Shown here: piece after piece, positions 6,365 to 54,488 of the stretch | Layout: the number at the start of each line of letters is the position of its first letter | Numbering within the stretch: position 1 is the stretch's first letter | Origin: Paraphysomonas bandaiensis | Taxonomy: Eukaryota > Protista > Chrysophyceae | NCBI GenBank assembly: GCA_965644295.1 | Contig: CBFFRP010000253.1 | Coordinates: 106,223-170,222, forward strand | DNA: 64,000 nt | Direction: 5' to 3' | Program-made: the position numbers and the translations under genes | The notes under the pieces: model-generated | What the model saw: only the letters and a program-made list of their open reading frames with translations | What the model was told of the DNA's origin: nothing | The model's database searches: none

Positions 6365-6564
6365 GTGTTATCTATATGAAAGATGGATGGGCCCTCTACA
6401 TAGAGAACAATGCTATGAGGTAGTGTGAAGAGGGTATCGTGCTGTTAGAGATTGAGTTAAAGTGATCTGCTGCATAAAATATCCAGACTCAAAAACACAT
6501 GAGTCAGTTGAACAACTACACACCCATATACAGTACATACTACCCAACCGTCAAAATACACACG

Positions 6565-7073
6565 TACATACATACATACATACATACATACATACATACA
6601 TACATACATACATACATACATACATACATACATACATACATACATACATACATACATACGTACATACATACATACATACATACATACATACATACATACA
6701 TACATACATACATACATACATACATACATACATACATACATACATACATACATACATACATACATACATACATACATACATACATACATACATACATACA
6801 TACATACATACATACATACATACATACATACATACATACATACATACATACATACATACATACATACATACATACATACATACATACATACATACATACA
6901 TACATACATACATACATACATACATACATACATACATACATACATACATACATACATACATACATACATACGTACATACATACATACATACATACATACA
7001 TACATACATACATACATACATACATACATACATACATACATACGTACATACATACATACGTACATACATACAT
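6565..7073 (+). repeat. (TACA)n microsatellite, about 510 bp, in a divergent promoter spacer
   Basis: Directly visible; four TACG variant units. Confidence 0.99.
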
Positions 7074-7228
7074 GCATCAGTCCACGTTGAGGACATGTTC
7101 TGGAAATGGTTTCTCAGTGGACTGTTTAGGACATTTGTGGCATTGGTATCCACGAATGCTAAATGCAATCGTGTCATAATATCAGACGTAAGTATTGCTG
7201 CATTTGATTCAATTCATACATAGTAATA

Positions 7229-7626
7229 ATGGTAAGTAACCCTGTCCGATGATGGTGTGTGTCATTCTCACTGCTTGATTCTGTTAGTCTAAAGGATTCG
7301 ACCCCAACAAATCCGCTATTAGTGGCGACAGCATGGGTGCCTTCATTATGGGTAGGGTGACGGGAGACCTTCTTGAGGTCCCTGGTATCGGCCCGACTGC
7401 CGTAAATAATTTACGACTAGAAGGAATAACTACTACGTATCAGCTGTTCGGGAAGTTCCTAATGTTGAAGGGAGAAAGAATGTCCTGTGCGGAACACTGT
7501 GACGCATTTTGGAATTGGCTCAATTCAATCGGAATCAATTCACATCGCTCAGGGATTGTTCGATGTGTTGCTGAGAAATTGGATACTATGTTTCCGGGAG
7601 TGTATGATGCCAATCAATTCCGTTAA
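7229..7626 (+). CDS. Barrier-to-autointegration factor (BAF)-like small HhH DNA-binding protein; ATG-only first coding exon, intron 7232-7287
   Basis: ATG|GTAAGT...TTAG|TCT gives MSKGFDPNKS in frame with ORF 7333-7626. VPGIG...GITTTYQLFGKFLMLK...FWNWL parallels BAF LAGIG...GFDKAYVVLGQFLVLK...FREWL. Confidence 0.72.
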
Positions 7627-9120
7627 AATTGCTGTATTCTGTTAGTAAATATAGAGAATCTTGCATACAATGTATTACTCTTTGTTTACGACATAGTGCA
7701 TTGCGGACGAACTTGGAATAAAAAATTAAAATATAGAAACACATCAAAATTGTGTAGCGTGAGCTTATGACACTGTTTATGATTTAACCTACTCTACTGT
7801 ATAAAAGAGTAGTATTAGACGATACGTGTAAGTTACATGTACATAACGTTTGAGTACTTTTTCCAGATCAACACTGAAGTAAATGATATATGAAGCCTTG
7901 GACCGCTATTATTCATAACACTGTTTTCGAAAAGGCAGTCATGAAGATGCCAGGAGGATTAAAAGACTCACTTACCAAGTTCAAAACGACAACACCGCGC
8001 AACAGGCAATAAAAGCGAGCACGTCTTAACAAGCAAACTTGATACCGCACCATGAAGCACATGCATGCCACAACCAATAAGGTTGATAATTATTAGAAGC
8101 ATTATTATTAGAGTTAAGGTTGCTATGTTAGAGCTACCTTTCTTACGCATGTTTCGTCGCCTCTGGAATAAATTACAGTTGAGCAAGCTATGTTGGCAGC
8201 TAATGTAAGTGTAGTATCAATTAATAGAGACAACAAGTAATAATTGCAATCATATTTTACTACAACCTACGCCAATTTATTATTACGCAGCCCTGAGTTT
8301 AAATGTTGCTCTCCATGAATCTTGATGAGTTTTCTAATTACTTATCCAAAGTCTGAGTAAATACACATATAACGTTTAGTCACTACATTAAGTGCTTTTA
8401 CATTACGATCAAACGACAACCAACACAAGCACTACATGATTATGACTACGAATTATCTTTGTTTTCTTCTTCTGGGGACTGCTTTAGTAGCACCCCTGTT
8501 TCGCTTCTAGTCCCAAAGTGAGCTCATGTTCTTCGCAATAACACACACATACGCACCGGTAACAACAGCGGGATTTTCACAGAACTCTTCTTTCCTAGAT
8601 TCAGTTACATTTTAAGAAGTAATAGCCTCAATCAATTCAAAGTCTCGTTGCACCATGTTTAGTGCGTCTTGTAGCTGGCAACGTTGCAGTAGAGTGCACC
8701 TAAATCTCAGCAAGCTTGCAATAGAAGAGAGGCGCATCTTGCTTGCTCTAAAGTGGAGTAAAGAAGTAACAATTCCTCAAACACTTGCTGATCTTCCCAT
8801 AGCGAATCAAGCTCTCAAACAATAGTGTGGGCATAGTGAGGGCATTGTAAGGCTCACTGAACTCACTGTGAGGTTATGCGCTAGTAAGAATTCTACAATG
8901 ACACTTGAAAACCCCGAGTTTTTTAGTCTAGAAAACCTATTTCTTTAGAAAAAAAATCGCGATATATCGCGAATGGTCTGCCTCCTCCATACACAACAGC
9001 AGGTAGCTTATACAGAGTACTAGAGTACACTCGTAAGAACTAGACTCAGCTGTACTGTATATATATATATATGTATGTCTATATTAGCCAGTGTCATTAT
9101 ATCATCCTTATATACTAAAC

Positions 9121-9819
9121 ATGTCATCTCAATTACCTGAACCATATCGAAGATCTGTTTCTATTTATGGATCACATACAGAAGGCATGCCACTGCCCTT
9201 CTATCGCCAGACTCCTCTCCCTATCCCTCCTGAAGAGGTCCCTCCATATCCTGCTGCTGCATTTGAAGGATGTGGATGGAAGACTATACAAGGAGTGGCT
9301 ATAGGTATATACTATAGCCTCTGTATATATCATACTCACATACACACGTATATATAACATACACATACATATATATAATAACACCTGTATTAATATTTTT
9401 GCCTATCCCTTCATATATAAGTATGTGAGTAATTGTTGCTGTGTGCCATAGGGGCGATTGCTGGGGCGGGGTTTGGGCTTATTATGTCAGCATTAGGAGG
9501 CGACACAAGTGGTGTTCGGATATGGAAAGGTAAAGAAGTTCCGCAAGCTCCACTCAGAGAGCAGTTGCGAGCGGGAGTCAAATGGACCGGGGGTAGAATG
9601 AAAACACTAGCGGGACAGTTTGCGGTTATCTCAGCGCTCTTCGGGGGTGTCGAGTGTGTCATAGAAAAGTACAGAGCTAAGCATGATGTTTGGAATTCAG
9701 TAGCATCTGGTTGTATAGTAGGTGGGACACTTGGTGCGCCTTCTGGGCCGACTGGGGCCTGTGCTGGTTGTCTTGGCTTTGCTGGATTCTCGCTCTTGGC
9801 TGATAAATTAATGGAATAA
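9121..9819 (+). CDS. TIM22: Mitochondrial inner-membrane translocase, Tim17/22/23 family, most like Tim22; intron 9305-9451
   Basis: FEGCGWK, FAVISALFGGVECVIEKYRAKHDVWNSVASGC and GCLGFAGFS; GxxxG-rich transmembrane helices. Confidence 0.85.
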
Positions 9820-10321
9820 AATTTTATATGTCAATACATGGATTAAATGTTACATATATCACTACGATGTTGCTTCTGGATAAATATGAATACTTGGTCC
9901 AGGACAATAACATGCTAGCATGTAATTTGGTCTATATAACAAGCAGTGCGGCAAGTATAGTAGAGCCGTAACTGTCCCATTCTGTTAGCGTTTTAGAAGT
10001 GATTGTCGTGATTGTGCATTCAGTTCGACATGATAATACAGATTTGGTAATAACCAAACATAATACTCAAGTGGTTGTTATGGGCGACCTCATCAAAAAC
10101 TTAAGAATCTTAGCGTACTAAATAGTTCTTGTTAAAATCGGATAATTCAGTATAGATGTCATTGCCCAGAGCAGTTCTCAAAGTAAAGCATTAAGCATTA
10201 GTACTAGTATTACTTAAGAATATTCAATATTGAGCAACGTAAAATTGAGCAAAAAATAAATTTTCTTCAGTACAGTTCGTAAAAACTTTGAGTTTAGTTG
10301 AATAACTATATCCTTTTTTAA

Positions 10322-11125
10322 CTATAACCGTACTTTAGTAACCAAGTCTTCAACGATAGTTGTTTTCTGAAATCCCAGTCAAAACGCATTGATGCTGATG
10401 CATCTATTAGGAACAAAAAGTCCACTGGGTTCTGCCTCAACCCAACAGTTTCTTGGATGCTTGCATATACCGCTTCAGGATTGCCTGCACGGTTGATTTG
10501 CCCCCTACATTAATGGAGACTCCCTTTGCAACCTTCAGGGCGATGAGGGGCAAGATCAATCGCAGGGCAACTGCATCTCGAGCAGGCAGATACATGACCC
10601 GCTTTTAGAGCAGAGTAACTTGAGCTTGCCTCATCACAGGCTGAGACGATTTCAATGACGAAGCAGAAGTTGTAAGGCGGTGCATTGAATTTCTTGAGAT
10701 TATCGGCTGCACTCGTCAGAGTATGCTGGCTACTATTGTCACCACCATCTGTCAGAATCGCCAATACCCAAGGGCGAGAGTGGTTTGCAGTGGAAAGTTG
10801 CTGTTAGACTGAAACAGAAGTAGAATCCCAGAGATGAGTGCCATTACTCTCTCTCGTTAGTCATTCTGCAGCACAGACCGAGACCGATCATCGCCATATC
10901 CTTCGAACCCAGAGTGACAATAGGCTTGTATTGAGTGTGGAATCCAGCCACAGAGCTTCGATCAATAGCTTTCATTGTTGAGTAGAGGAATTGTGCCGTA
11001 TTTTGAATTGCCACTGCAATCCTTGAAGTCGATGACACGCCCTGAGAAGTTATTCCGGGAGATGATCTTTTTCCGGGAGGAGCAGGTGCTGGGCTGTGTT
11101 TGTCTTGTGACTCACAAGCACCCAT
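10322..11125 (-). pseudogene. Disrupted vWA-domain gene with an N-terminal MGAC acylation motif
   Basis: vWA motifs GTHLWDS, ILTDGGDNSS and VDFLFLIDASASM are present across frames. Frameshift at the (GA)n tract near 10850, in-frame TAA at 10804-10806, further frame changes downstream. Confidence 0.65.
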
Positions 11126-11440
11126 TGCTACGAGTTTAGCTTAGTTCAGCTTAGTTTATTGGGTGTTTGTTGATTCTTGTCTTTGGTGAGTGAAAATTCC
11201 TGTTCTGCACTTCCGGATTGTTCCTGTATAAACATATCTTCAATCGGCAGATTTCAGTTTACTACAATCTATCTGGTGTTTGGTGATATATATCCGAATA
11301 CAGACAGTGTCACAGTATACTCTGGAGGTACAAAATCAGGTGTTTTCACTCTAGAAAGTAAAAATATTGTTTTTTTAATATTATGATATCACTATATTTC
11401 TGTGCAGAGGCCTGCAGCAGTAACACTGCGATATACTAGA

Positions 11441-11541
11441 AGTACATACAGCAGTACATACAGCAGTACAGAAGACACACAGCAACACAGCAGTACATAC
11501 AGCAGTATATACCAGCATATAGCAGTGTCCATATACAGCAG
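11441..11541 (+). repeat. Degenerate 12-bp minisatellite (AGTACATACAGC) in a divergent promoter spacer
   Basis: Directly visible; contains TACAGCAG four times. Confidence 0.85.
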
Positions 11542-11641
11542 CACATGCATCTACGTATCTCACTCATACCATACACAATCACTTCACTTAACTAACCCAC
11601 TCAACCAACCAACCAACCAAACCAAACACACATACATACAA

Positions 11642-13912: not shown

Positions 13913-14565
13913 GCAGTGATTCGCTGTTGTGCGAATAATTCTTGAAATAGTACATAACATTAATATCTGACACATTGGTTGTGAATATGAAGATGCATTA
14001 TAATTTTAATTATCACACAAGTAGTTGACAATGTTTTTATATGAAATTTTCTGTCAAAATAGGTACCGATGGACCTTTCGATCTACCTATACCTGGAGCT
14101 TATAGGGACTTCACACCTAGTGGGTATCTATTTTCTATCTATATAGGTATTCTGATAAATACCACCCATAGGTACCACACATCATACATAATAGAGTTGC
14201 CGCAGCTTCTACCTATATGCTATATGTCAGCTTTGCAGGGCGTCTGTTATGGATAATGGATATTCAATAGTTACCTAACAATTACAGCCCAGTAACGAGC
14301 TATTCTAAATCAATGGTGATTTTGACAAAGAAAAAATAGTATTTAATTTTATAATGTACTCAACTCCAGTAAGTAAACTTAATGACACTTCATTTTAAAT
14401 AGGGTAACAATTAGTATGAATTCCAGTATAATTATTCATCACCACACGGTGTACATTTCACAACAAAATACTCTATAATATACCGTCAAATGCATTAGCA
14501 ATAGGTACTAACAACACAGGAAAGTACACCTTCTGACAAAAAGAACACGAAGATCGACGCTTTAT

Positions 14566-15885
14566 TCAAGAAGATAATACCGTAGGTTGAGGAATTGTGG
14601 TGAGTGCAGGTGTAGGGATCGTGACTTCGCACCTCTCCTCAGATACCACCGCCACTTCCTTTGTCTCTGCATATTTGGCATATTCGTCTGACACATAGTA
14701 GAAGCGCCGCAGTTGTTCCTCTACCGACAAAGGTAGACCTGGATCCGAGGGTGTAGAAGTATCTTCATCTTGCGTCATCTCTGGCGGAGAGTATGGGTCA
14801 CATATGTCAAGGCTCACCTCTCTCAGGTTAGGACGAAAAGGGGGTTGCACCACCATGTTCTCTACTTGAGAATACGAAAAACCGCTTCCAAGAAACCAAT
14901 CACTGTTACATAACCTGGCGTAGTTGTTTTCCCCATGCCCAAGACGGTGAGTCTGTCGAACGTCCAATAGACCAGATATCACCCGTACACAAGCGTCCGA
15001 TAAATGCCCATTAACTGGGGATGCCTCAGGCACAGGTACTCGTAGCTTGTCGTTTAATAAACCTCTTTCTCGGCAGGACCCAAATGACATCAGGTTGCGC
15101 TGGACAGGGACAGTGCTGGAAATAGCCACAGTGGAAGCTTTAACAGGCTTCTCTCGCGCAAGCTTATCCTCTGCATACCGTATGAAGTCCAATGGCACAT
15201 GCTTGGAGAAGGGTCGCTGGCCATATACCATCTCGTATGCCACAACGCCAAGACTCCAAAAGTCAGAAGCACATCCGTGAGTGTGAGACTTAGTAAACAC
15301 CTCAGGGGCTAAGTACTGTCGTGTCCCACTGGCCATGTGGCAAATAACATCATGATCCTGCGCCACAATTTTGGGCTCTCCAACATACGACACTCCAAAA
15401 TCCGTCAGAAGAGCATAACCATACTCGTCAAACATGATATTCTCCGGCTTTACATCACGATGAAGAATACCTTTGCTGTGGATATGATGAAGAGCTGAAC
15501 TGATACAAACCACTACAAAAGCAACTCGATCCTCAGTGAATGGCTCTCGTCGGCGCAAATGATATCTGAGATCTCCACCAGTGCACAGGTCAAGAGCCAT
15601 GTAGCAGTACTGAGCATCATGAAAGGCGGAGTTGAGTCCCACAACAAACTGATGTCTTCCCACACTCTTCAGTGCTCTCAGCTCCGATAAAATCAAACTT
15701 AAACCATGCTTATGAGTGAGAAGTTGCCGTATGTTGATTTCTTTCATAGCAAACCAGTCCTTCGACTGGAGGTGCATCACAGACGAGACTTTACCGAACC
15801 CGCCCTTACCGATCGTGTAGGAGAACAGGAACTTCTCTCTGCTGTGTGTGTTAGTGGAGTGTAGTTTAGTTGGAGAGGAGCCCAT
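14566..15885 (-). CDS. AGC-group Ser/Thr kinase (STK32/YANK-like), probable N-myristoylation (MGSSPT)
   Basis: GKGGFGKV, AMK, HRDVKPEN, DFG, GTRQYLAPE, DFWSLG and the PPFRP AGC tail. Confidence 0.9.
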   Translation of the reverse strand: MGSSPTKLHSTNTHSREKFLFSYTIGKGGFGKVSSVMHLQSKDWFAMKEINIRQLLTHKHGLSLILSELRALKSVGRHQFVVGLNSAFHDAQYCYMALDLCTGGDLRYHLRRREPFTEDRVAFVVVCISSALHHIHSKGILHRDVKPENIMFDEYGYALLTDFGVSYVGEPKIVAQDHDVICHMASGTRQYLAPEVFTKSHTHGCASDFWSLGVVAYEMVYGQRPFSKHVPLDFIRYAEDKLAREKPVKASTVAISSTVPVQRNLMSFGSCRERGLLNDKLRVPVPEASPVNGHLSDACVRVISGLLDVRQTHRLGHGENNYARLCNSDWFLGSGFSYSQVENMVVQPPFRPNLREVSLDICDPYSPPEMTQDEDTSTPSDPGLPLSVEEQLRRFYYVSDEYAKYAETKEVAVVSEERCEVTIPTPALTTIPQPTVLSS

Positions 15886-16234
15886 GCTATGAGTGTGTAT
15901 ATGAGACACGTCTGATATTATGATCCACATACACATACATACACACGATACCACACACCCCTCACATGATCATAGAGGGGAAGGTGTGCCAATATACACA
16001 CACACTGGACTACAGACATCCACATCCACAGACACACAGGCCACTAGCCTCCAACATATAGACACACACCCCTCCACATACATACATACATATAGACACA
16101 GAGGCCCCCAATTCACATACTCGAAGATCCACCCACACCCACATACACACACACATACACACAGAGGCCCCTAAAGATACACACCTAACAATACATATGT
16201 ATACAGACACACATTGCCCTACCCCTACACATAC

Positions 16235-16235
<1 letters not shown>

Positions 16236-16265
<30 letters not shown>

Positions 16266-16355
16266 CATACATACATACATACATACATACATACATACAT
16301 ACATACATACATACATACATACATACATACATACATACATACATACATACATACA
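16236..16355 (+). repeat. (TACA)n microsatellite, about 120 bp, in a divergent promoter spacer
   Basis: Directly visible. Confidence 0.99.
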
Positions 16356-16423
16356 TGCATATACAGTAACTGATCAGTGTTCATATGACTATCTCACTCT
16401 CTCCTCTTCATTTAATCACTCAT

Positions 16424-17251
16424 ATGGCAACAGAATTCTCTCGTCTCTATCGTGAACTCTGTCATACCGGTCCTAACACTCCTGTCTATGACTTACAATT
16501 CACAAAAGAACGTAAACAAGTCCTTCAATCACTCGGATATGAAATCAAATCAGCTCCTATGAAATACACTGTCTCTAAACATCATGGTAAAGGGGCAAGA
16601 AGACGTAAACATGAAGCACATTTAAAAGCTATTTCAAATAATGATACAAATGATCGTAAAAAACAATTGAAGATACGACAACTGACACGACAGACACAAG
16701 AAGTCAATGAATTAACCAATAAGATCCAAGCATTAATAGCTGATAATAAATATATATCACAAAATTTATGGTCAAAATATGATAAAATATATGGACAATC
16801 AATGGAACCTTATGAGAAGTCTCATTCTGCACCTAGTGGAACATCTACACGATCACCAATGAGATCAAGTGCTGTAATGAAACGTACTCCAGCTGTATGT
16901 CGTGGTGATTATTCGAAAAGCAAATGGAGTAAAGAGGAGCGTGATCGTCTTAATACTATATACAGAGAGTTTCGTAAACCATTATCTAAAAGTCGTGCTG
17001 CATGGGAGAATTATTACATAGAGTTCGCCAATATATTCCGTGTGTTTTTTAGTAATAGGACGGAAGAAGAGGTAGTAGAGAAGATTAAAGATATGTACGC
17101 TCGGCGTCAGTTTGAAGAGGTAGGAGAGAAAAAGTATTGGGCTAAAGTAGGGGCCACAAGCCCAGTGAGAAAGCAGAAGGTTGTAAGCGAGAGACACACA
17201 AAGACACTCCCCCCTGTTACCTCCACGGCGAAACTGAAATCTTTACACTGA
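16424..17251 (+). CDS. Basic coiled-coil protein with a Myb/SANT-like C-terminal domain
   Basis: Intronless ORF; SKWSKEERDRL...W...F.NRTEEEV resembles a Myb/SANT repeat. Confidence 0.55.
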   Translation: MATEFSRLYRELCHTGPNTPVYDLQFTKERKQVLQSLGYEIKSAPMKYTVSKHHGKGARRRKHEAHLKAISNNDTNDRKKQLKIRQLTRQTQEVNELTNKIQALIADNKYISQNLWSKYDKIYGQSMEPYEKSHSAPSGTSTRSPMRSSAVMKRTPAVCRGDYSKSKWSKEERDRLNTIYREFRKPLSKSRAAWENYYIEFANIFRVFFSNRTEEEVVEKIKDMYARRQFEEVGEKKYWAKVGATSPVRKQKVVSERHTKTLPPVTSTAKLKSLH

Positions 17252-17347
17252 TGCCTGCTATAGCTATTTTGTATATATTATCTTTGTTTTGTTGTATATT
17301 TATCACACAAAGCCTATGCAATGCATGGTGATTTGCATGGAGAATGG

Positions 17348-17459
17348 TGTTGTAATAGGTCATGTAAGATGTTTTCGTACAATGCTGTATCACCGAGTGC
17401 TTTTGTTGTAATAGGTCATGTAAGATGTTTTCGTACAATGCTGTATCACCGAGTGCTTT
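17348..17459. repeat. Perfect 56-bp tandem duplication
   Basis: TGTTGTAATAGG...GAGTGCTTT occurs at 17348 and 17404. Confidence 0.95.
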
Positions 17460-17676
17460 GAAAGTGTTGTCAGGGTTATATTTTGCTCATTGCTCACATA
17501 TGTGTGACGAAAGTTTTGAATTCGTTAGGTATCTCTTTCGAGATATTTCTGCCAGCTGCATTACAGTTTGTTGTGTTTCTTACACTTGGACTGTACACAG
17601 CTTTGTGCATTTATCACATCATATACTCATATACATGGTATGCTATTCAATACATAGTACATAGACCGTGCACATT

Positions 17677-18000
17677 CCCTCAACAAAGTCGGACTCGCAC
17701 TTTTTCGTGGTGTAAGTATCGGAGATAATTCTCCAGGAAACTAACGTGAGCCGCATATACATTCAGCAACTGCTTGTGTGGTACAAGGGGCACAAATAAG
17801 TGTCACTTGTGTACTTGTGTAGACGTCTTTTTGGGCCCTGACGAATAGATAGGCATTCAGAACTGGGCCGACCTCACGTGCATCCAGGGTACTGGGCTGC
17901 CTGCTGAAGGCAAGCATCCGGGCTGCTAACCTTAAGAACTCAAATATGGGGACAGGAAGTAATAATTACAATTATAATTGTCAACAACCTGCGTCAATTA
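17677..18000. repeat. Degenerate interspersed repeat (transposon remnant)
   Basis: 17677-17860 aligns by eye with 43232-43450. 17945-18000 aligns with 36750-36805 (reverse) and 8228-8280. Confidence 0.7.
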
Positions 18001-18278
18001 ATTGACAATACGTACTAGATGGGCCTGAGAACTACGAAATACGCAACAATATCTCCATTTCCAATATCTTCAATTCGAAAAATATCATTACAGTTTTACA
18101 ATATAGTTAACAAGCAAATAACTATTTACTGCAGCGCAAGATCTGCGTAAATAGTTACGACATTTCTACGTACACATTTAATAGTCCCTACTTAGCGAAT
18201 GACACATATGTTCAGAGACATATCAAGGAGTCATAACCCTAATCTTACCATAGAAGTATATTTACAATATGTAACCAA

Positions 18279-20421
18279 TCATACCGACATCGGGCTGGAG
18301 TTTGAATTCATCTTATCTCCCGACGGACTTGAAGGCTTCAACACACTTTTATGAGATGCCAGGATAATCGCATTGTAGAACGACTTAAATTCGCTGAAAT
18401 CGATGCGACCATCCTTGTTAGTGTCAATTGCAGAAAACATGTCTTTAACACTAATAGCACTTCCATCAGCGTCACTCATCACGAGTAACGGGCCAGTCCC
18501 GTCATGCAGCATACAATTCACCACCAGGTCTAATTCCCCCTCTGATATAAATCCATCTTCGTCCATATCAAACACAGTGAAATATAAACGGGCGGCTTCC
18601 ATTTCTTCCTCCTCGTTATCATAACACCTCAGAGCGGCCAAAGCCATGAGAACTTCTTTCACATCCACCCGACCGTCCCCATTACAGTCAAAGACAGCGA
18701 AAACCTTACTATTGGCAAGAATATCCAGCTGCGCTGACTTCACCAGAGTACAGAATTCCTCATATCCAAGGGAGCCTTGTCGAAGAAGACGTACCGAGTT
18801 TTTGTCACTACTTTTCTCCTCGCCCACCACTTTCCCATCCTCTTCCGCACTACGATATATCTCCTTTACCAGTAACTCCTTCAGGCCCAAAAGTCGACTA
18901 GAGAAATCTGCAGATACACGCTGTATGTCCTCATCTGAGGCGCTTCCTCTGGAACGAAGAAAGGGAAGGACGTGTTGAAACCCCTCTTTCCTTTCCTTGT
19001 GAATCTCCATTGCTCCGTTAGCAAGAAAGTACTTTTTGAGGCGTCCCCTAAGTGCTAAATGTTTGATACGGTGCAAGTAGGCTTCACCGAGGTGTTTCTC
19101 AGGAGCACAGTGTGTAATCCACGGGTGAGAGAGTACCTCATCTAGGTCCATCCGCTGCGTGGGATCTTTAACAAGCATTTTGCGAACAAGATCCTTGGCG
19201 GACTCTGATACCCCCTCCCACGTAGGGCCTGCCATGGCATAGTATGTAGAATCTGTGATCTGTCTCCTGTACCTGCAAAATATCATCAGACATTACACTT
19301 CTAGATTTAATAGTTTTAAATTCTATTAACACCAAAACGCACTCACTTTCTCCCAGTGTGGAACGGCGCGTATCCTGCCAGCATACTGTAGAGTACACAC
19401 CCAGCTTGCCATACGTCACTTTTAGTAGAGTATTGGTGTCTCAATATGCTTTCTGGCGCAAACCAGCCCTCAGTGCCGACTAAGAGCCCTGTCTCCAATA
19501 TGCCACTACCGTCACTTGGAAGCGCAGCCATGAACCCGAAATCTATTATCTTAATCCCACCGCCCTCCCCAGGAGTAGTATGCATCAGGTTGTCCAGCTT
19601 GAGATCACGGTGAACGAACCCTTTACGATGGATGCTCCGTAACGCTAGCATAGCATTTCGAAAGGAATGAGAAAGATCTTTCTCAGATATACTCGAACGC
19701 ATAGACATACGCTGAAGCCAATCGCCACCACGTAACATTTCCATTACGATTACTGGATATGGCTGACAAAACTCAGGATTCTTCCCAGGAACTGTTGTAT
19801 TCGTATATATATCAGCACTTTAAACATATTTTTATTTAATACTTACTTAACCCACTTGCTGTATCCTTGAACACCCCAATCAGTTGAACTGCACCCTCCA
19901 CACCTTCCAGTGCAGTCATCAACATAATCTCATGTGCAATATCCACACTTCCCGGGGGTTGCTTAGTGTACCCAAAAAATTTCTATTCGTACATAATTAA
20001 AAGCAACATTAGAAGATATGCATACATATATCAATCCCTATATATTATATCATACCTATACACATCATGCCTATATATCCTATCTACATACCATCTATAC
20101 GTGCATGCCATCTATACGTAGATACCATCTATACGTGCATGCCATCTATACGTAGATACCATCTATACGTGCATGCCATCTATACGTGCATGCCATACAC
20201 ATAACATCACGCTTATCTCTACATGTATATCATATACATACCATAGCAACTGTCGACCCATCTGTTCGATGTTTAGCAGCATATACTTTCCCCCTATATA
20301 TACATATATCAATACAGATGGTTATGTATAGAGAGTATAGAGATTACCATCCACCCTCTTGTAACATATCTTCTACAATATAATCCTCATATTTGAGTTG
20401 ATGAGGTGATGATGATGTCAT
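18279..20421 (-). CDS. Ca2+-regulated protein kinase with C-terminal EF hands (CCaMK/CDPK-like), 5 exons
   Basis: Exons 20421-20348, 20293-20242, 19982-19847, 19791-19347 and 19272-18279 splice in frame. VAMK, HRDLKLDN, DFG, APE; EF loops DCNGDGRVDVKE, DMDEDGFISEGE and DTNKDGRIDFSE. Confidence 0.9.
20091..20194. repeat. Intronic 17-bp minisatellite with two unit variants (order ABABAA)
   Basis: A = CCATCTATACGTGCATG, B = CCATCTATACGTAGATA. Confidence 0.9.
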
Positions 20422-20699
20422 TGTGAATTAAGGAATTAATAGATTGAGATTATATGAATAGAAGGGGTGTGTATATGAGATGATTGTAATAATAATGAAG
20501 AGGTGAGTGATACATACATACACATACATACATATATATGTATATGTATACTACTGCTGCTGTACTATACACAGAGAGGATTTAGAAAAGAATATTATTT
20601 TGATTGAACTCCTATGCACACTATACCATATGGAAGAGTACGTACTTGTGAAAGGAAAGATCTTCAGTCTACAGTAGTGTATACAGCAGTATACGTACG

Positions 20700-21107
20700 T
20701 ACATACATACATACATACATACATACATACATACATACATACATACATACATACATACATACATACATACATACATACATACCTACATACATACATACAT
20801 ATATACATACATACATACATACATACATACATACATACATACATACATACATACATACATACATACATACATACATACATACATACCTACATACATACAT
20901 ACATACCTACATACATACATACATACATACATACATACATACATACATACATACATACATACATACATACATACATACATACATACATACATACATACAT
21001 ACATACATACATACATACATACATACATACATACATACATACATACATACATACATACATACATACATACATACATACATACATACATACATACATACAT
21101 ACATACA
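20700..21107 (+). repeat. (TACA)n microsatellite, about 410 bp, in a divergent promoter spacer
   Basis: Directly visible; TACC and TATA variant units. Confidence 0.99.
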
Positions 21108-21355
21108 TTCAAGTATCATCTAGATCATCTTCATATATCTCTCTTCCAATACACTTCATATATTTGAACTTCTACCAATCATCTTCCTTCCTTCACATAC
21201 TTCACACACTCTCTTCTATCTTCCCTATCAACACACTCTCCCATAACATAAAGGCCCATACATACATACATACATACATATGCGTGGATCCTCCTAACCG
21301 TCTAATCTCATATCGATTTTATTTTTTTTGTTCTATTAATTTTTTTTATTTCAGT

Positions 21356-22204
21356 ATGAGAGTATTGACTCTTGTGTATGTATGTACTGTCATTAATAGC
21401 ACTGGTTTACTATATCTATGCAATGCATATGAAAATGGAATAAGAGGCATTGAATCACATGGAAACTGGAGGAATAAATTAATGCAAGCCAGATATGGTA
21501 ATAAGCGTGATTTAGATGACACTATTGCTGGAAATCAGTATACTGTAATGAGGAAAGACAAAAATGACAAAAATAAGGACAAAAATGGTAAAAATAAGGA
21601 CAAAAATAAGGACAAAGGGAAAGAAAAGGACAAAGGGAAAAATAAGGACAAAGATAAAGGGAAAGATAAAGGTAAGAAGAAACATCCAACAGCATCCCCT
21701 ACTCCTGTTCCTCCAACTATCGACCTATCTTCTCAGTCCTGTGCGTTATATTGTGATGGAATCTCTGCGTCATGCACTGCAGAAGACGGGTGCTGTGACT
21801 CCGGATACACTCCATGTGATGCCTTCGAATTCGACGAGGAAGGTCTTTTTCACTGCGGAAAAGATGACACTTTCCTCGGTGACTGCGTCGAGCATGATGT
21901 CATTGTGCATGCTGTCAGCGGTGGGTACTTGTTGCTCTTCTATTTTCCTGTCATTGACTAACTGGTGCTTATTACAGCACCTGAGTGTTCACTGTTTTGT
22001 GATGGCACTTCCACAGCTGTTGGGTGCGGAAAGGGGGATCACTGCTGCCCTGAAGGCTTTCTATTATGCAATTCAAGGGACCTTGTTGAACCAGATGTAA
22101 ATCAACAGGGATTCCATTCAGAGCTATACAGGTGTGCTCGATTGGAGACGTTTTCTCCTACGGGCAGGTGTACTGGCCTCCCAATTTCTGATAACCCCAC
22201 TTGA
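21356..22204 (+). CDS. Putative secreted protein: signal peptide, KD/KG-rich tract, Pro/Thr linker, two Cys-rich modules; intron 21921-21977
   Basis: Hydrophobic N-terminus; repeats CALYCDG...GCCDSGYTPC and CSLFCDG...HCCPEGFLLC; the 57-nt intron joins the ORFs in frame. Confidence 0.65.
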
Positions 22205-29000: not shown

Positions 29001-31588
29001 CCATCAATACACCTGTATATCACTATCATCAGCAAAAAAACGGCAAATGAGGAAGCGAGTACCTCTGTGACAAAGACCAGACGGGAATGGATACAGACGA
29101 CAAGCTGGGAAATAACTCTCGACGTGTTCGCCATGAATTCGAAAAATAGGTCTGTGATCCCGGACCATGGACCGGAAATCCAGCATTCCCCGAGATCGCC
29201 GCCGCTTTGGCGGGCAAGTAAGATGAGCCAAGTCCTGCATGGCGTCGTGTAAAATGCTTTTATCCAACATCAACGACGGTGATGAGCCCTTAATACTGTC
29301 AATCCTTCTCCTCAACCATGTACAAAGTCCAGGCAGGACAGGACCTTGCACATATGCCTCCTCAATCAACCGCCGCAAGTATATATCAGGCGGAAGTGGG
29401 GAGGGTTCGTCTTTTAGCAGAGCAACCAAAGGGCGCTCAGATTGGACAGGAAGTGTGTGACGAGACGACACGGAGAGGCTGAATAAGGAATATTCTTCTA
29501 GTTCTATCACCACGCCCACCCTGCCACATATATCACCATTTGTTTCATAAGCTCCTCCTACACCGGTCTTTGAAACGGCGAGTTTGGTTGACACTTTTCT
29601 ATAAAACATAGAAAACGCTTTCAAAAATATGGATACCGAAGAGCATTCATACGCACCTGTTTACACGCTCTCGTATCTGTGACTGAATCAGAAGGTCTGT
29701 AGTAGCCACACCAATTATATCTGGATCACATGTGCTCTGCTTATGACCGAGCAGTAACACACGTACTTCTTTCTGGGGCGCACACAGCAACGGAGCTATG
29801 AACTCGTGGTCTCGAAAGTATGCCTTGCATCTGTCAGGGTCGTCGTGTATCTCCACCTCTGCCCATCTGTCACCTGTCAGGTCCTGCGCACTGACATTGG
29901 AGTCGCCAGATACAGCAGTAGGTGTAAATGTGCTTGCTTTAGAAGACATTACTACTCCGTCTACTTCAACCTCCACGCGCACTCTCTCAGCGGCCTCCAG
30001 GATTCTTCCCACGACGTGTCGCACATCAACACGTAACACATACGGAAGAAAGTTAACGTTGCGACTCTGCCCTTTTACTACCTACAGGGGACGTAAGTTC
30101 CGTCAAAAACATGTAGTGCACTCACCATGTGTCTAAACCAGCACCGTGTACGAACCGCTGCACACACTTCCTTGTGCTCTTCCGAAATCTCAACGCGAGA
30201 CACAACCATGGCTTCTTCATCCATGAGAGATCGATATATATCCTGAAAGCAGGACGCATAATGGAACCCCTCCGTGTCAGTCATGCCATGGCGTACAGAC
30301 ACACTCCACTGATCCGCCCACTCATATCCATCGAGCAGCTCCACTGCTGCCAACGAATCTACTGAACTAACTCCAGCAATGTCTGACAAAGCAGGCCAGT
30401 CCGAAGAAGTTAAATTAAACCGACTCCATCTATTGCCCAACCTCTGGTTCTCACACACTATGGCTGTCACATAAACAACACCTTCCGTGTTACCTATAGA
30501 TGCCAAGTTACGCCTTCTAGACGAGTAAAACGTGGAAAATTTATGACTTGAGTACAGGCGAAGGGCCTGCAAGAAGATAGATCTGTCAGGTGGATGAAAA
30601 CAAAAGCCAGCGATTCAAACCTGCAGGGTGCTACTATCTACGGATGACACAGAGTTTCGACCCTCAGTACTGCGGCGCTGAGGCTTGCTGTAACCTGTAC
30701 ACAACACCTTTTCATAAAATCGCATTGACTCACGCAAACATTACAACCTATTGGCGTTCCGAGTCTTCCATATGACTCCAACAGTGCATATTCCGCAGGA
30801 CTAGGACGTCGCATTGTACGATACCAAAGACGTCTCCGGTAGACTTGACGCGGCGTAGGTCTGCTGGTACTTTTATTCATAAGATACTTGTCTATGACAC
30901 GATCACTTGTGGTTCCATAACTCCAACCTTCGCTGTCCATTTTGGTGTAGTACTTGTCTACCCGCCACTCCATTGTCCATAAGCATCCAGGAAGACACCC
31001 CAAAGCATCTAGTGACATATATTCCACAGCAGACCGAACCTTCTCGTCCGCAAAATCTGCTAATATAAAGTTCCGAGTTTTCCATCCGCCATGAAACATA
31101 TCATACTTCTGGTTTTCATATACACGACAAATCCCTGCACTGTTGACAGTTGGCGATAGTGATCGATGACCTCCAGACTTTCCAGAACACATAATCGATT
31201 CTTCATTCTTTATTCTAACAATACGAAACCATAAACGACGACGATATCGTTGTCTAGGTGTAGGATAAGCATTACTACAATTATTAATAAGTTTTTCACG
31301 TATTCTATCTTTGGATGTCCCATAACTCCATCCATTATCATCTTGTATAGTATAATCTCTATTGATCATCCATTCAGTAACCCATAGATACCCTATTGGA
31401 CAAGACATATCAGTTAATTTATGAAAAGAACCAGATATAAGTCCAGTTTCATCCGCATATTTTGGATGATCAGCTTGCCATCCAAATAAACCATAAATTT
31501 GATATTCAAACACTTCAATTTCTTGATTTCCTTCGGTATCAAAACATGGAAATGATGGTTTACGTATAGGAAAAGCAGATGATGTCAT
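23078..31588 (-). CDS. Large multi-exon membrane-trafficking-type protein: three DysF (dysferlin/Pex24p) domains, C2-like and PH-like segments, Sec6/MUN-like helical region, C-terminal C2-like segment
   Basis: Three copies of (Y/F/C)E.Q...W...G(W/F).Y...R.R.W.R. Several junctions splice in frame with about 50-55-nt introns. Domains other than DysF are judged by eye, and some 3' exon boundaries are unresolved. Confidence 0.65.
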
Positions 31589-31783
31589 ATGTGATAGTTA
31601 TGTATGCATTGGGGTGTGAATGATGGTATGATCTATGGATACACTGCTCGACTCTATATACACACCCTCCAAGAAGATAACACACGCTATAGATACACAT
31701 ACACACATCGAGAGAATTCAGTGTATGTATGTACAGCAGTACTCTTCCTACTGTACCTACATATATACAGTACCTACCTACAG

Positions 31784-32099
31784 TACATACATACATACAT
31801 ACATACATACATACATACATACATACATACATACATACATACATACATACATACATACATACATACATACATACATACATACATGCATACATACATACAT
31901 ACATACATACATACATACATACATACATACATACATACATACATACATACATACATACATACATACATACATACATACATACATACATACATACATACAT
32001 ACATACATACATACATACATACATACATACATACATACATACATACATACATACATACATACATACATACATACATACATACATACATACATACATACA

Positions 32100-32127
<28 letters not shown>
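31784..32127 (+). repeat. (TACA)n microsatellite, about 345 bp, in a divergent promoter spacer
   Basis: Directly visible; one TGCA variant unit. Confidence 0.99.
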
Positions 32128-32130
<3 letters not shown>

Positions 32131-32312: not shown

Positions 32313-33157
32313 ATGCCAGTTGACCCACATGCCCCCTTCGATCTCTCCTCTCTATACGAGTTCTGCAATCAGCCTGCTGTCCCTATTATCTCTGTCTTAT
32401 GCTATCTCCTGATATCTAATAAGATAACCTCTTATATACGTGATATACTGGGACTTAAACCGAAAGGTATTGTTATCCAATCAATTACCACACTACACAG
32501 CTTTGCATTGGCGGTGTATTCTGGATGGACGTGCTATCACAGCTGGAGAATTGTGTATCCTTATTATCAGGAGCACGGGTTCTATGATACATTCTGTGAC
32601 GCGGATGGCTCTCTATGGCGATTGGCTGGGTGGTGGATTACCCATTTCTACATATCAAAGTATTATGAATGTAGGTTTCTCTCATGTTTATAACTAATGT
32701 CTAGTTACTCTTATTTTCACGAGCAGTTATTGATACTTGGATTGTTGTGTTGAAAGGAAGAGATCCGATATTCCTCCAAGTATACCATCATGCTGGTGTC
32801 GTAATTCTTATGTGGGCGACGGTTGTCACCCAGTGTACTTCGGCTGGCATTGTCTTACTGTGCTTGAACTCCGCTATTCATACCGTGATGTACACCTACT
32901 ATACACTTGCAGCTTTCGGGTACCGTTCCCCTCTAAAGAATTACCTGACCATAGCACAAATGGTTCAATTTGTCACTGGAATCGGGTCGACTCTCTTCAT
33001 GCATTTTAAGGAAGGGTGTATAAATCAGTCGCAGCAGCTCACGCTTGCTGCAGTGCAGCTCTACGCTGTCGGGCTTATTATCCTCTTTGGAAAGTTTTAC
33101 ATCGACACATACACCTCGAAAGGGAAAAAGAAATCTTCTACAAAGAAGAAAGATTAA
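32313..33157 (+). CDS. GNS1/SUR4 (ELO) fatty-acid elongase with a variant QxxHH box; intron 32671-32726
   Basis: FYISKYYEFIDT, FLQVYHH, NSAIHTVMYTYY, TIAQMVQF and a C-terminal di-lysine (KKKD) ER-retrieval motif. Confidence 0.93.
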
Positions 33158-34595: not shown

Positions 34596-35375
34596 TTCTC
34601 AGTAATATTTCCAATAATTTGACGTAATACAACCACACAATATACACAAACAATGAAATGAATCAATATCAGTATGGTGTTAAAGATAGAAGGTACTATA
34701 TACTGATAATAAACTGGGTTTATGTATGTATTGGAGTATGTGGAATATGCTGTACATGATGCATTGAAAACTGTGCAACTACAGACTAGATACATATGCT
34801 CCTGTACAGTAGATATGGTCCCTGTTTCCTTACCACAAATTCATGAAAATTGCCATTTTTTGTATAAACTGTAGTAGAAATATATGGTTTCTGGAGAGTG
34901 GAATAGAGGATATGGATAAACTGAAAACATTGACTCTTAGAGATATTGAGTAATGCAGTTGTATGTATGTATCCTCGTACTCTGTGTATGTACAGTATAC
35001 AGTATACCATAGCATGTGAGTAGGATATATCTGTGTATGCTGCTGTATATATACATACACATGTCTACGAAAGTGGTATATAAAAACAAAAGCACATGAA
35101 ATTTAGGTTAAATAAATAGGGTGAATATAAAAAAAAACAGAATACACCAAAAGGAAATTGCCTATAAATATCGGGTTTTATGTACAGTAGTATATAGCAA
35201 TTCTTGCTGTAAACCGTCCACATACTGCATAAAGGATGCATCCATTGCCCCATGCATACATTCCTAGAAAATTAACTGTAGGTATATAAGCTCCAGTCAT
35301 TTATAGGAGTAAAGTATGCAAAGTAAATGAGAAGAATGTCCAGTGTATCTACTATCTGTTTCTCTGCATAACACA

Positions 35376-36748: not shown

Positions 36749-37705
36749 TTTAATTAAAGTAGGTTGTAGTCAATTATAATTGCAATTATTATTTGCTGTC
36801 CCAATTTCTATTACTTCCATTCATTGATCAATTAATTAATGCATGCATATTTCAACTAATTTTGAATGTATGATGTCCCATTCAGAGGGCATGTCCTAGT
36901 AGTGTGCTAGTGTTGATTAAACTAAGCAATGTATAGTTCATTAGTATCCCGGCGTATTCTTTGTGTGTGGCACCAAGCAAGCTCCTGCTAGATACTATAG
37001 TTGCATAGTCCATACACGATTACGATGCCATGCTAGGTCTGTATTGAGTCATGCATAATCACAAGAAGCTCCGCGCAATTTTTGTTAGGGGTGCGATGGT
37101 GAACATATCTTTGGCTAGAATCCGCGTGAATTACATATACAAGTCATGCATAGCTATGAGATATCTCGTGAAATCTATATGAAGGCGAACAGAGATGGAG
37201 AAGTAGGGTGGGCGGGTAGGTAACTGCGTAAAATCAGCACCAAATCATGGTGATATAAGCGGTGTTTATACGCTATGGCCAAAGTGTGGGAAGAGGGCAC
37301 GTCCTGTCCAAATCCATCCATACCATTCCAACTGCTCATGCTAACCGTCCTGTTACTTAATACATGAGAAATAATATGCATTACAGAAAAATTAGGATTT
37401 TTATAGTTTTCTGAAATGAAGGGATGAAAAAACAGGGTTTTATAGCAGTCGATTTCCACAAAAGATGACTTTTATATATCGAGTGGTAGTTGCCATTTCA
37501 TATTTCAGTTTATCCCCTTAAGATACTTCTATGTAGCCAATGGGAAGTTCGTATTATTTTTGAGAATCGTATGTCAGTGTTCTACGTCTATTTTCATATA
37601 TAATTCATAGTATATAATGGACCATATATTCGACACCATGTAAGCGTACTCACTCTATAGGTATGTATGTATATATATGAAACTATAGGTGTGTATGTAC
37701 ACTAC

Positions 37706-37748
37706 ATACATACACATACATACATACATACATACATACATACATACA
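37706..37748 (+). repeat. Short (TACA)n tract upstream of the SNF2 gene
   Basis: Directly visible; followed by a (TA)n run. Confidence 0.9.
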
Positions 37749-42991: not shown

Positions 42992-43028
42992 GAGATGACA
43001 TGAATTTAGCGATTGGCAAATGATATTA

Positions 43029-43711: not shown

Positions 43712-43918
43712 TAACAATAAGTCATTCACTACTGATGTGCCTATATATATTGTGTCCCAAATACACGATATTGTGACTTGTTCGCGCATTTATTACGTGC
43801 AATGTGATATGGCAAAAAAAGAACACCCAATATCACATCAAAATTCCAGTTATATGCATCAAAATATTTCCACATACACCACTTAACCTCTAGTCATGCG
43901 TTTCCGTATTTCACGCAA

Positions 43919-48786: not shown

Positions 48787-50114
48787 ATTTACTTCTCTCT
48801 ATTGGCCACTATATCTCTTGTATTGATATTTTAAGTCATTTATTACACGTTTTTTTGCTACATGATATTTTGTGTGTGATACCACTATACTATTTGCTAT
48901 ATTTTAATATTATGTTTTGTTTTTTTGCCAGTCATCTTTTATAGCTACCAAGATTTAGCTATTCTATTGAAAGTAATAACGATTATTTTGAGGTTTAAAC
49001 CAACACTTGTAATACACATGTCTATGATCTATGAGTATTATATTTCCTCTACAAACAATTGTCTCTAGAAATTAGAATGGTATAATCCTATTGTGTCTAT
49101 ATTAAGGTGTCGGGTACGTCACAGCTGAATCAGAGGTGTGTGTCATGGACGTCACAATCGATAAAAGATCATGTAAATTTTATTTTAACTGGTCTTTCAG
49201 TGCGTTTTGTAACTGTCAATGGAATCAGTATGTTTAAATTAAATTTATTAGAGACAATAGTGTACACAATGCTCTTGCATCGCATAAATGCGCAGATTTT
49301 GCTGTCTATGTGGCTATTGGCATGAATATGGAGTCAGTTAGACTCCTGTTGAAATATATCACATCAGAAGAACTCTAGAATCAAAAGAACGTCAATAATG
49401 AGGCTTTCTGCAATATCATTATTAGTTCAGTTGGGCGATATGGGAGTGTCAATATATCACACTATATACTATCAGACAGTGCACACAGTGATCTAATAGC
49501 ACACTGCAGGACGAGATGACACTCTAATCAGTGTGTGTATTCGTTCATCATGCAGATACCATGATCGTGCATATCAATATATCTTACTAGTATAGATGCA
49601 ACTTATTTGTAGCTCATGTATATATATGTATATGAATATATATATGTATGTATGGCTGTATGCATATGAATGTGTCCATTAACAGATGCATCTATGAGTT
49701 GTCAGTTGAACTATATCCAATCATTTAATAGGAAAGTGTAAACAAGAGATTTTATTCGTTAACATAGTCACTTACACTATTGTATCCAATCATATAATAT
49801 AAACTAAAAAACAAGATATATGATTAGTTATTTTCTTCATGGACTGTATTTTTGTTGCACATATATATACATATATACACATATGCAACATGCTCCTCAC
49901 ATGCATGCAGCTCATGCAACTCATGCATTGCTTGATGACATAGAATGCAATATATTGCAACTATAATCCATCCTATCCATCCATAACACTTTATCTTCTA
50001 CTCCACATCATATCATAACCCCCTTATTCCCTTCAAAGGGGAACAAGCATCTCTATATATACATATATATCTATACACATATATATACACACTTATCTAT
50101 ACATATATTGCATA

Positions 50115-52440: not shown

Positions 52441-52800
52441 TCTATTGTATTTCTGTAAAACCACTTGTTGTAAGATAAATTCTTACATTGTATGTACATA
52501 AGTCAACATCACTTCTGAAACAACTCTATTTATTCTTGATTGCTATCAATAGTCAATAGCGTATAGCATGTATATCACGTTCATAGCAGCATAACAGCTA
52601 GACGCATCGATCAACATACTTTTGCAATTCTGAATTCAGTACCTATCATGCCAATAAAAAGATATAAGTTTCACATCTATCTACTGTAAGCAGAAAAGAT
52701 AAAAAGTCACAGTAATGTCCATAGTTAAATTCACATTAAGACTCTGTATTAAATATACATGCATGCTGCTCATAAGACCTCTAACAAGCAATACTATTGA

Positions 52801-53682
52801 CTAGCTTCTAACGTCCATTCCTTTTAACCCACCTCGTAAGCTATCTGTTCGTTTCTTTCCAAGTTTGCTTTTGTGTTTTCCTAGGGTCGCCCCTGGCATC
52901 GTAGAAGGCACGAATCCATCTCTGAGGCACACATGGTTGTTAGCAAGGGGTGTACAACTATATGATTTCTCCTGTAGGAAAGTAAGCACCGCAGAGGATT
53001 CAGCCCCTTCAAAGTCTCTTCGGGTTGTTTCAACAAGAATTACATCTATCTCAACTTCTTGAAAGTCCGTGCCTTGTAAAACCTGTAACTCTCCACCCTC
53101 CACATCTAGGACCCATATATCAATGTGGCGAATTTCTAATTTGCGCATAATGTCTTTAAAAGGGATACACTGTACTTCCCGTACACGATCAGAACTTCGT
53201 GTGAGATGATACATCTTATGAAATCTCCTTATAAACTCTGGTTCCATAAACTCTAATATACCATCCACTGGACTACCACCAATACGAAATAAATAATGTA
53301 AAGTACGTGATTCATTACATAATGCAGCATTAATATTTATAGAATGTGGACGATTAATTTGTAAAGCATTATAATGATGACTATTTCCTTCTATGTGTAT
53401 GGATGTCCAGTTAAATAGATGCTCAAACATATACGTAGTTGAGAAGAGGATTCCATCTAATGCACCTGATTCAATGATGAGTCCATCAATCATACCATAA
53501 AAGAAATTTTCATATAAAAGAATATCTTCCTTCATTTGTGCTTTATGAGAAGATGATCCTGATGATTTATAGAGAGGTGGAGTGAGAGTGAGAGAGGGAT
53601 TGTAATGACATCTAGAGGGTAGAGGGATAGAGGAGAGAGATGAGAGAAAAGAGAGAAAGAGAAGGTAGGGTAGAGATGACAT
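52801..53682 (-). CDS. FkbM-family (Methyltransf_21) methyltransferase with an N-terminal signal/anchor
   Basis: AQMKED, IESGALDG..STT, NAALC and IDIWVLDVEGGELQVL. True start is MSSLPYLL; the YIHT leader in the ORF track is microsatellite. Confidence 0.88.
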   Translation of the reverse strand: MSSLPYLLFLSFLSSLSSIPLPSRCHYNPSLTLTPPLYKSSGSSSHKAQMKEDILLYENFFYGMIDGLIIESGALDGILFSTTYMFEHLFNWTSIHIEGNSHHYNALQINRPHSININAALCNESRTLHYLFRIGGSPVDGILEFMEPEFIRRFHKMYHLTRSSDRVREVQCIPFKDIMRKLEIRHIDIWVLDVEGGELQVLQGTDFQEVEIDVILVETTRRDFEGAESSAVLTFLQEKSYSCTPLANNHVCLRDGFVPSTMPGATLGKHKSKLGKKRTDSLRGGLKGMDVRS

Positions 53683-53739
53683 GTGATGGATGATATTGTG
53701 AATATATGTGATACCAAGCCCCTCAGTTACTATATATAC

Positions 53740-53740
<1 letters not shown>

Positions 53741-53770
<30 letters not shown>

Positions 53771-54296
53771 TGTATGTATGTATGTATGTATGTATGTATG
53801 TATGTATGTATGTATGTATGTATGTATGTATGTATGTATGTATGTATGTATGTATGTATGTATGTATGTATGTATGTATGTATGTATGTATGTATGTATG
53901 TATGTATGTATGTATGTATGTATGTATGTATGTATGTATGTATGTATGTATGTATGTATGTATGTATGTATGTATGTATGTATGTATGTATGTATGTATG
54001 TATGTATGTATGTATGTATGTATGTATGTATGTATGTATGTATGTATGTATGTATGTATGTATGTATGTATGTATGTATGTATGTATGTATGTATGTATG
54101 TATGTATGTATGTATGTATGTATGTATGTATGTATGTATGTATGTATGTATGTATGTATGTATGTATGTATGTATGTATGTATGTATGTATGTATGTATG
54201 TATGTATGTATGTATGTATGTATGTATGTATGTATGTATGTATGTATGTATGTATGTATGTATGTATGTATGTATGTATGTATGTATGTATGTATG
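53741..54296 (-). repeat. (TACA)n microsatellite (TATG on the plus strand), about 555 bp, in a divergent promoter spacer
   Basis: Directly visible; essentially uninterrupted. Confidence 0.99.
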
Positions 54297-54488
54297 CATG
54301 TATGTGTATGGTGAACTGGTACGTGTATATATCACTCTGTTTATTATACTGTAATTCATTATTGACCACCATAGCATACAGTTACTTCACCATATTATAA
54401 CTGTATCTGGCTACCTCAACCCCTTTCTCACTATTCACACTCTTCTTAACCCCCCTAGACCTCTCATATACTCCTTCTGTGTGTCCCT

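Follow-up and report, generated by a model that had tools for sequence, protein, structure and literature searches.

Long, nearly pure (TACA)n arrays stand between divergently transcribed genes of the marine chrysophyte Paraphysomonas bandaiensis, and in the regions sampled here they are confined to such spacers. We describe them from a 64,000-nucleotide stretch of contig CBFFRP010000253.1 of assembly GCA_965644295.1 (C253:106223-170222, hereafter the window; the assembly holds 62.5 Mb in 669 contigs) and from a second, independent contig. An initial annotation of the window, made from its letters, had proposed that the arrays form the core of bidirectional promoters. We find instead that the arrays are not transcribed and form spacers in the middle of some bidirectional promoters, and that transcription starts in the unique DNA beside them. 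The reading that we prefer, and to which we give somewhat better than even odds (about 0.55), is that of a promoter-gap spacer linked to negative supercoiling, with a possible structural role.

Arrays were called by Tandem Repeats Finder (TRF) and by a separate in-house scan. The in-house scan reproduces the five arrays of the initial annotation nearly to the base, and TRF agrees. By TRF these five long period-4 arrays have 96-99% matches and 0-1% indels. The purity of the units is 96-100%, rare variants being single substitutions (e.g., TACG and TACC), and the lengths range from 121 to 565 bp. The features are as follows (each seen by TRF and by unit purity, array 1 also by direct inspection of the sequence).

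6556-7077, plus strand: array 1, (TACA)n, about 130 units, four of them TACG variants
16229-16361, plus strand: array 2, (TACA)n, 30-33 perfect units
20691-21108, plus strand: array 3, (TACA)n, about 104 units
31754-32129, plus strand: array 4, (TACA)n, about 90 units
53741-54305, minus strand: array 5, reading TATG on the plus and TACA on the minus strand, 138-141 perfect units

Placement of the arrays among intergenic spacers

All five arrays lie between a gene on the minus strand to the left and a gene on the plus strand to the right. This arrangement had been claimed from the start, and it is borne out by open reading frames (ORFs) called by codon score, by Pfam matches and by spliced or colinear transcripts. 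The independent sample is the first 200 kb of contig C1 (C1:1-200000), which lies outside the window and brings the pooled sample to 264 kb. Coding segments were called by a codon-usage score trained on long ORFs and then merged into genes. C1 contains five array loci of 127-1346 bp, and each of the five is again placed between a left minus-strand and a right plus-strand segment, several of the flanking genes being backed by Pfam matches.

The comparison of divergent, tandem and convergent spacers that the initial annotation had suggested was run on the pooled sample, where arrays occur in divergent spacers alone: 10 of 28 have one, and none of the 28 convergent or 45 tandem spacers does. Fisher tests against the divergent spacers give P=7e-4 for the convergent class and P=2e-5 for the tandem class. 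The window by itself had been said to have array-free convergent spacers, and none of its seven convergent spacers, nor any of its eight tandem ones, bears an array. In C1, divergent spacers make up 17.6% of the intergenic bases outside arrays, and all five arrays fall there (P=1.7e-4). When counted by promoter, with 56 divergent and 45 tandem promoters, the tally is 10 vs. 0 arrays (probability about 0.003). Nor does any array lie in the 3′ part of a tandem spacer of the sample. The evidence thus supports the specificity of the arrays for divergent spacers and their central position between the two genes.

A trivial explanation would be that arrays gather wherever spacers are long. This is ruled out: the median convergent spacer is 1370 bp and the median divergent spacer 627 bp without arrays, and tandem spacers are also longer than divergent ones. 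Because convergent spacers are the longer ones, space or tolerance does not explain the divergent bias.

The arrays are also numerous. The perfect 40-mer (TACA)10 has 127,597 matches in the genome, and an array locus of the 264-kb sample accounts for about 98 of them; the genome should therefore hold roughly 1,300 array loci, or about 0.9% of the 62.5 Mb. The share of divergent spacers that bear an array is 5 of 8 in the window, 5 of 20 in C1 and, by extrapolation, about 20% genome-wide. A comparison of array coordinates with the coordinates of 120 kinase genes placed no gene within 10 kb of a listed array, both lists being too sparse for a homology-based 5′-versus-3′ comparison.

Transcript ends beside the arrays

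Transcript ends were mapped at arrays 2 and 5. To the left of array 2, the JGI transcript L029 of a Ser/Thr kinase gene is colinear with the window from 16141 to 14323, and its 5′ end is 88 bp from the array. To the right, runs X8 and X13 give spliced RNA contigs with 5′ ends at 16397 and 16411, the nearer being 36 bp from the array, and no loose end of these contigs runs into it. A contig of run X5 does enter array 2, by 25 nt, and X5 is DNA, since the introns are kept. Contigs built from short reads break at the arrays. Array 2 takes up 133 of the 255 bp between its two observed transcript ends. At array 5, the 5′ end of transcript L030 (53696) is separated from the array by 45 bp, and the junction bears TATATATACA. 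The array-to-start distances, read from assembled contigs, are therefore 36, 45 and 88 bp (n=3), and in two of the three cases an array edge or TATA-like junction is found at about -36 to -45. Repeat units are present in none of the three transcripts. The arrays are thus left untranscribed, and the core promoters are in the unique 36-90 bp beside the array.

Three other approaches to start sites gave nothing further. A homologue search with the ARM-repeat gene of C1 returned no match, exact-protein look-ups for five array-flanking genes found no match (one array-less control gene was recovered), and metagenome scans with 5′ coding words of array-flanking genes were equally without a match.

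The kinase transcript has its 5′ end (16141) at the border of an alternating CA/TA tract of 24 bp (16140-16163). A second alternating tract, at 16075-16094, lies inside the 5′ untranslated region of the kinase gene; transcription can therefore include short tracts, in contrast to the long arrays.

These positions bear on the proposal that the array is the promoter core, either as a site for a multimeric factor or as a TATA-like platform that drives both genes, with array length tuning the output. At two mapped 5′ ends the array edge is 36 or 45 bp upstream, a TATA-box-like distance, and TACATACA is two positions off TATAWAWR. Moreover, the unique DNA between array and start is so short that only the array itself would be left to supply upstream elements. 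There is also a precedent in trypanosomes, where GT-rich elements can drive initiation by RNA polymerase II and deposition of H2A.Z (PMC5579346). Against this, a TATA-like repeat should seed starts throughout its length, and no start falls inside an array in any of the three transcripts; the third start is as far as 88 bp away. Arrays are lacking from 18 of the 28 divergent and all 45 tandem spacers, and array-less genes are still expressed: one divergent promoter without an array is active, with ADH transcripts that end at 34646-34708. Since an array is lacking from most divergent promoters and from every tandem promoter sampled, the array is not a general promoter core, and we consider it unlikely to be the core even of the promoters that possess one. 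The central proposal of the initial annotation is in this respect not upheld.

Possible origin and role of the arrays

Where could such arrays come from? A likely source is seen in ordinary promoters. With the long arrays masked, we counted the regions that contain a strictly alternating pyrimidine-purine run of 16 bp or more. Upstream of genes, 33 of 82 array-less regions have one; downstream, 4 of 91 do (P=4e-9). Among upstream regions, 51% of the divergent and 30% of the tandem ones have such a run. The runs combine TA, CA and TG steps and often take a form close to TATATACACA. Short alternating tracts are thus a general promoter feature of the organism, which suggests that the (TACA)n arrays are the expanded extreme of these tracts. 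Short or degenerate tracts had been reported at the other promoters of the window. This is partly correct, for a (TACA)13 tract and for six mixed TA/CA tracts; the tract at 11431-11521 is a different repeat with a period of 12.

37698-37748, plus strand: (TACA)13 followed by (TA)10, upstream of an SNF2-family gene that starts near 37891
9056-9078, 9337-9377, 35044-35064, 49615-49654, 49856-49887 and 50072-50092: mixed TA/CA alternating tracts

The tract at 37698-37748 (46-51 bp) is the only TACA tract above 40 bp in a same-strand (tandem) spacer of the sample.

Another short sequence is unevenly distributed among the spacers. The word ACAGCAGT (in extended form TACAGCAGTA) is found 10 times in 20.8 kb of divergent, once in 39.6 kb of convergent and three times in 55.5 kb of tandem spacer. 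It adjoins the left edges of arrays 3 and 4 (20683-20690 and 31733-31740), occurs in C1 at 17376-17395, among other places, and makes up the period-12 repeat at 11431-11521; we take it as a candidate promoter motif.

TACA was described from the outset as a strict alternation of pyrimidine and purine, and all arrays of the window and C1 are of this Y-R-Y-R type. Their uninterrupted alternation over 121-1346 bp, at 96-100% purity, is what is looked for in the sequence of a Z-DNA-forming flipon. The alternation is one of TA and CA steps, and by Z-propensity tables this makes (TACA)n a poorer Z-former than CG or pure CA/TG repeats and a more bubble-prone one. In the twin-domain model of Liu and Wang, negative stress adds up between diverging polymerases, cancels between genes in tandem and gives way to positive stress between converging polymerases. 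A distribution that is all divergent, with nothing in tandem or convergent spacers, is the one predicted by the model for net negative supercoiling. The supercoiling produced by divergent transcription had been invoked before; the distribution fits it, and from the fit we infer the involvement of supercoiling itself.

We propose the following sequence of events. Short alternating promoter tracts would be the seeds. They would expand through slippage during replication or repair, where the DNA is nucleosome-free and under net negative supercoiling, and the favoured site would be the space that two diverging polymerases leave between them. There, strand separation and slippage would be helped both by negative stress and by open chromatin. 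Once long, the alternating tract could absorb stress by flipping from B to Z or by opening a bubble. The array might then act as a torsion buffer that holds the shared gap open. TG-type repeats have been discussed in such physical terms, as torsion buffers and bubble selectors (PMC8053131).

Some of our observations weigh against this reading. The sample amounts to 10 arrays in 264 kb, and the window itself was picked for the pattern. Gene calls in C1 are ORF-based, and one array flank there (78781-78990) is a weak ORF of 70 codons. The three mapped start sites belong to arrays 2 and 5 and come from assembled contigs, whose 5′ ends are inexact. Finally, the duplex stability of (TACA)n, -1.09 kcal/mol per step by nearest-neighbour calculation, is low and not exceptional: it ranks among the roughly 6% of 200-bp windows with the lowest stability. 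For the latter reason, an exceptional DNA-unwinding element was rejected as the property that distinguishes the arrays.

It could also be that the arrays are purely neutral. In such a case, seeds would run away in open chromatin with no effect on the neighbours, and the bias for divergent spacers would come from a wider nucleosome-free region and from the seeds of two promoters instead of one. The initial annotation had kept a by-product of slippage in open chromatin as its own fallback, and this remains fully viable. The high purity of the arrays fits fast slippage turnover, seeds are present promoter-wide, and the range of lengths is wide (121-1346 bp). TACA arrays are missing from contigs of related organisms (52 kb in total, at 50-65% protein identity), suggesting a young, lineage-specific expansion; the evidence is weak, since these contigs were assembled from short metagenome reads and would have broken off at an array. 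However, the promoter-wise tally given above calls for something beyond the number of seeds, and it would be surprising if some 1,300 loci of several hundred bp beside core promoters had no effect whatsoever. We thus hold strict neutrality to be possible, as a minority view; it overlaps with the part of our preferred explanation that concerns the origin of the arrays.

At the other end is the view that the arrays are selected flipons of bidirectional promoters, where Z-form or bubbles would insulate both genes from each other's stress and keep the gap nucleosome-free, and array length would set the buffering. This is a tentative extension of the supercoiling-linked reading, to which we lend limited credence. 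If true, it would represent a microsatellite-based answer to the coupling of divergent genes, undescribed in any eukaryote. A Pfam z-alpha search of the genome returned no match, and it was uninformative since the controls were equally silent.

The arrays might also mark replication origins, of the type of A+T rich islands, or hotspots of meiotic double-strand breaks, and have expanded from the initiation or repair that occurs there. They are 75% A+T, and 62.5 Mb divided by about 1,300 loci gives roughly one array per 48 kb. A spacing of about 48 kb is within the inter-origin distances of small eukaryotic genomes. Origins in fission yeast and hotspots in budding yeast prefer divergent promoters to convergent regions. 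The likeness to the origins of fission yeast extends to A+T rich intergenic blocks that are mostly between divergent genes and tens of kb apart; unlike the TACA arrays, those blocks are not microsatellites. The spacing argument is loose, as the window has five arrays in 48 kb, and skew analysis cannot tell replication from transcription at divergent pairs. We regard this explanation as improbable.

Microsatellite tails are known in some retroelements, and an array could be a passenger, the tail or the target of a promoter-inserting mobile element; it could even be an artefact of assembly. The sequences around the arrays speak otherwise. An all-against-all BLAST comparison of 20 flanks of 400 bp from ten arrays found them unique and unrelated, the two matches being of low complexity and 18-28 bp long. 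Without a common element sequence in the flanks, the transposon tail was rejected. No array of the window or C1 has a transposon inside it. The arrays are spanned within long contigs, and a DNA contig from a run of another strain enters array 2 from the unique flank. An artefact or a passenger is thus the least probable of the explanations considered, and very hard to sustain.

How do the arrays compare with repeats known from other systems? Like promoter microsatellites, they are upstream of the start and outside the transcript, and they are enriched over other non-coding DNA (10 of 10 in divergent spacers). In yeast, promoter repeats and poly(dA:dT) tracts are likewise simple repeats just upstream of starts; they lie in nucleosome-depleted DNA, are unstable in length and are proposed to tune expression (Vinces et al. 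2009 in PMC3899988). The yeast repeats are short, varied and found in all promoter types, whereas here there is one tetranucleotide that extends over hundreds of bp to more than 1 kb and, in our sample, is restricted to divergent spacers. With Z-prone (TG/CA)n flipons (PMC8053131; PMC2677879) the arrays have in common the strict alternation of pyrimidine and purine, the promoter site and a predicted response to negative supercoiling. They differ from described Z-prone repeats in their genome-wide scale and divergent-only placement. The dispersed GT-rich promoters of Trypanosoma brucei (PMC5579346) also consist of low-complexity, TG-containing DNA between divergent units and are linked to open or variant chromatin. 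In T. brucei, however, initiation takes place over the GT-rich DNA and the units are polycistronic, while here single genes are involved and the starts are outside perfect microsatellites.

The literature on Paraphysomonas, on stramenopiles and on bidirectional promoters was searched, and no description of the TACA-array pattern was found. To our knowledge, neither the genome-wide scale nor the divergent-only placement of such repeats has been described. The distinctive features are a single tetranucleotide, a length of up to 1.3 kb, about 1,300 loci, a location in divergent gaps only and initiation outside the repeat. Known promoter microsatellites and Z-prone tracts are usually scattered, varied and short, with roles that are hard to test. 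Here the sampled arrays occupy just the zone for which the twin-domain model predicts maximal negative supercoiling, and the organism offers a natural, genome-wide experiment on whether the torsion of transcription shapes the evolution of repeats. It also raises the question of whether alternating pyrimidine-purine repeats serve as torsion buffers or as spacers of open chromatin. On the practical side, the arrays can flag bidirectional promoters for annotation.

Flanking genes and neighbouring sequence

The genes on the two sides of the window arrays are listed below, from left to right.

4970-6364, minus strand: 465-aa gene left of array 1, ATG at 6364 and 192 bp from the array, no Pfam match
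7288-7623, plus strand: exon of BAF (barrier-to-autointegration factor) right of array 1, Pfam PF02961
14323-16141, minus strand: Ser/Thr kinase mRNA left of array 2, coding sequence 14566-15954 (Pfam; colinear with L029), ATG at 15954 and 275 bp left of the array
16397-17377, plus strand: mRNA of the gene right of array 2, with a transcript-borne ATG at 16424, 63 bp from the array
18093-20479, minus strand: CDPK-like gene (kinase and EF hands) left of array 3 (Pfam, RNA contigs), ATG at 20421 and 270 bp from the array
21356-21958, plus strand: ORF right of array 3, ATG 248 bp from the array, no Pfam match
30641-31588, minus strand: Pex24p-like gene left of array 4 (Pfam), ATG at 31588 and 166 bp from the array
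32705-33154, plus strand: exon of an ELO fatty-acid elongase right of array 4 (Pfam)
52717-53696, minus strand: mRNA of an FkbM-type methyltransferase left of array 5 (Pfam), 100% identical to the JGI transcript L030, ATG at 53682 and 59 bp from the array
54459-54797, plus strand: EMC3/TMCO1 exon right of array 5 (Pfam), ATG at 54489 and 184 bp from the array

The start codons that can be fixed are 59-275 bp from the arrays, in agreement with the distances of about 60-350 bp given earlier. The right-hand ATGs of arrays 1 and 4 belong to small, putative first exons. At array 4, earlier ELO exons are nearer the array, because the Pfam match begins at position 101 of the profile. Introns in the window are short and of the GT..AG type; the CDPK-like gene has five exons with such introns of 54-259 nt, and RNA contigs carry its transcript to at least 20479. 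Between array 3 and the ATG at 21356 is a short (CATA)6 at 21257-21280.

The nearer of the two ATGs had been assigned to the gene whose sense strand reads TACA, and avoidance of upstream ATGs suggested itself as the cause of the strand of the arrays. The window is compatible with the assignment; in C1 it fails, applying to only two of five arrays, and overall it is not significant. Since the mRNAs do not include the arrays, the argument from an ATG-free strand no longer has a basis, and avoidance of upstream ATGs was rejected for this reason and for the count in C1.

The closest homologues of two array-flanking genes (50-65% identity) are carried by L031, L032 and L033, which are metagenome contigs of related organisms. 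The divergent spacers there are without TACA arrays, and one has (CA)12.

Transposon debris had been reported in several convergent spacers. This was verified for one stretch, 17667-17956, in the convergent spacer between the gene pairs of arrays 2 and 3. The depth of DNA contigs is 30,000-90,000 there and about 100 around it, and the stretch has many alternative joints. It is probably a small mobile element, present as a very high-copy repeat.

TRF also reports two perfect tandem duplications in the window, one of 34 bp x 2.9 at 20088-20187 and one of 56 bp x 2 at 17348-17459. The former is inside the 259-nt intron of the CDPK-like gene (19983-20241), where RNA contigs give small separate pieces.

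The JGI transcripts of one sample match the window at 99.45% over the kinase gene (14323-16141) and at 100% over the methyltransferase gene (52717-53696). Runs X5, X8 and X13 have differences from the window in common, in keeping with either a second haplotype or a strain that is closely related.

Copia-type elements (integrase and zinc finger) are found at 1695-3968 on the minus strand and at 56785-59172 on the plus strand, with near-identical Pfam profiles. A second copy of the kinase gene is on the opposite strand at C253:103595-104518, 1.7 kb before the start of the window, and its score equals that of the window kinase. The opposed copia elements and the second kinase copy together suggest an inverted duplication.

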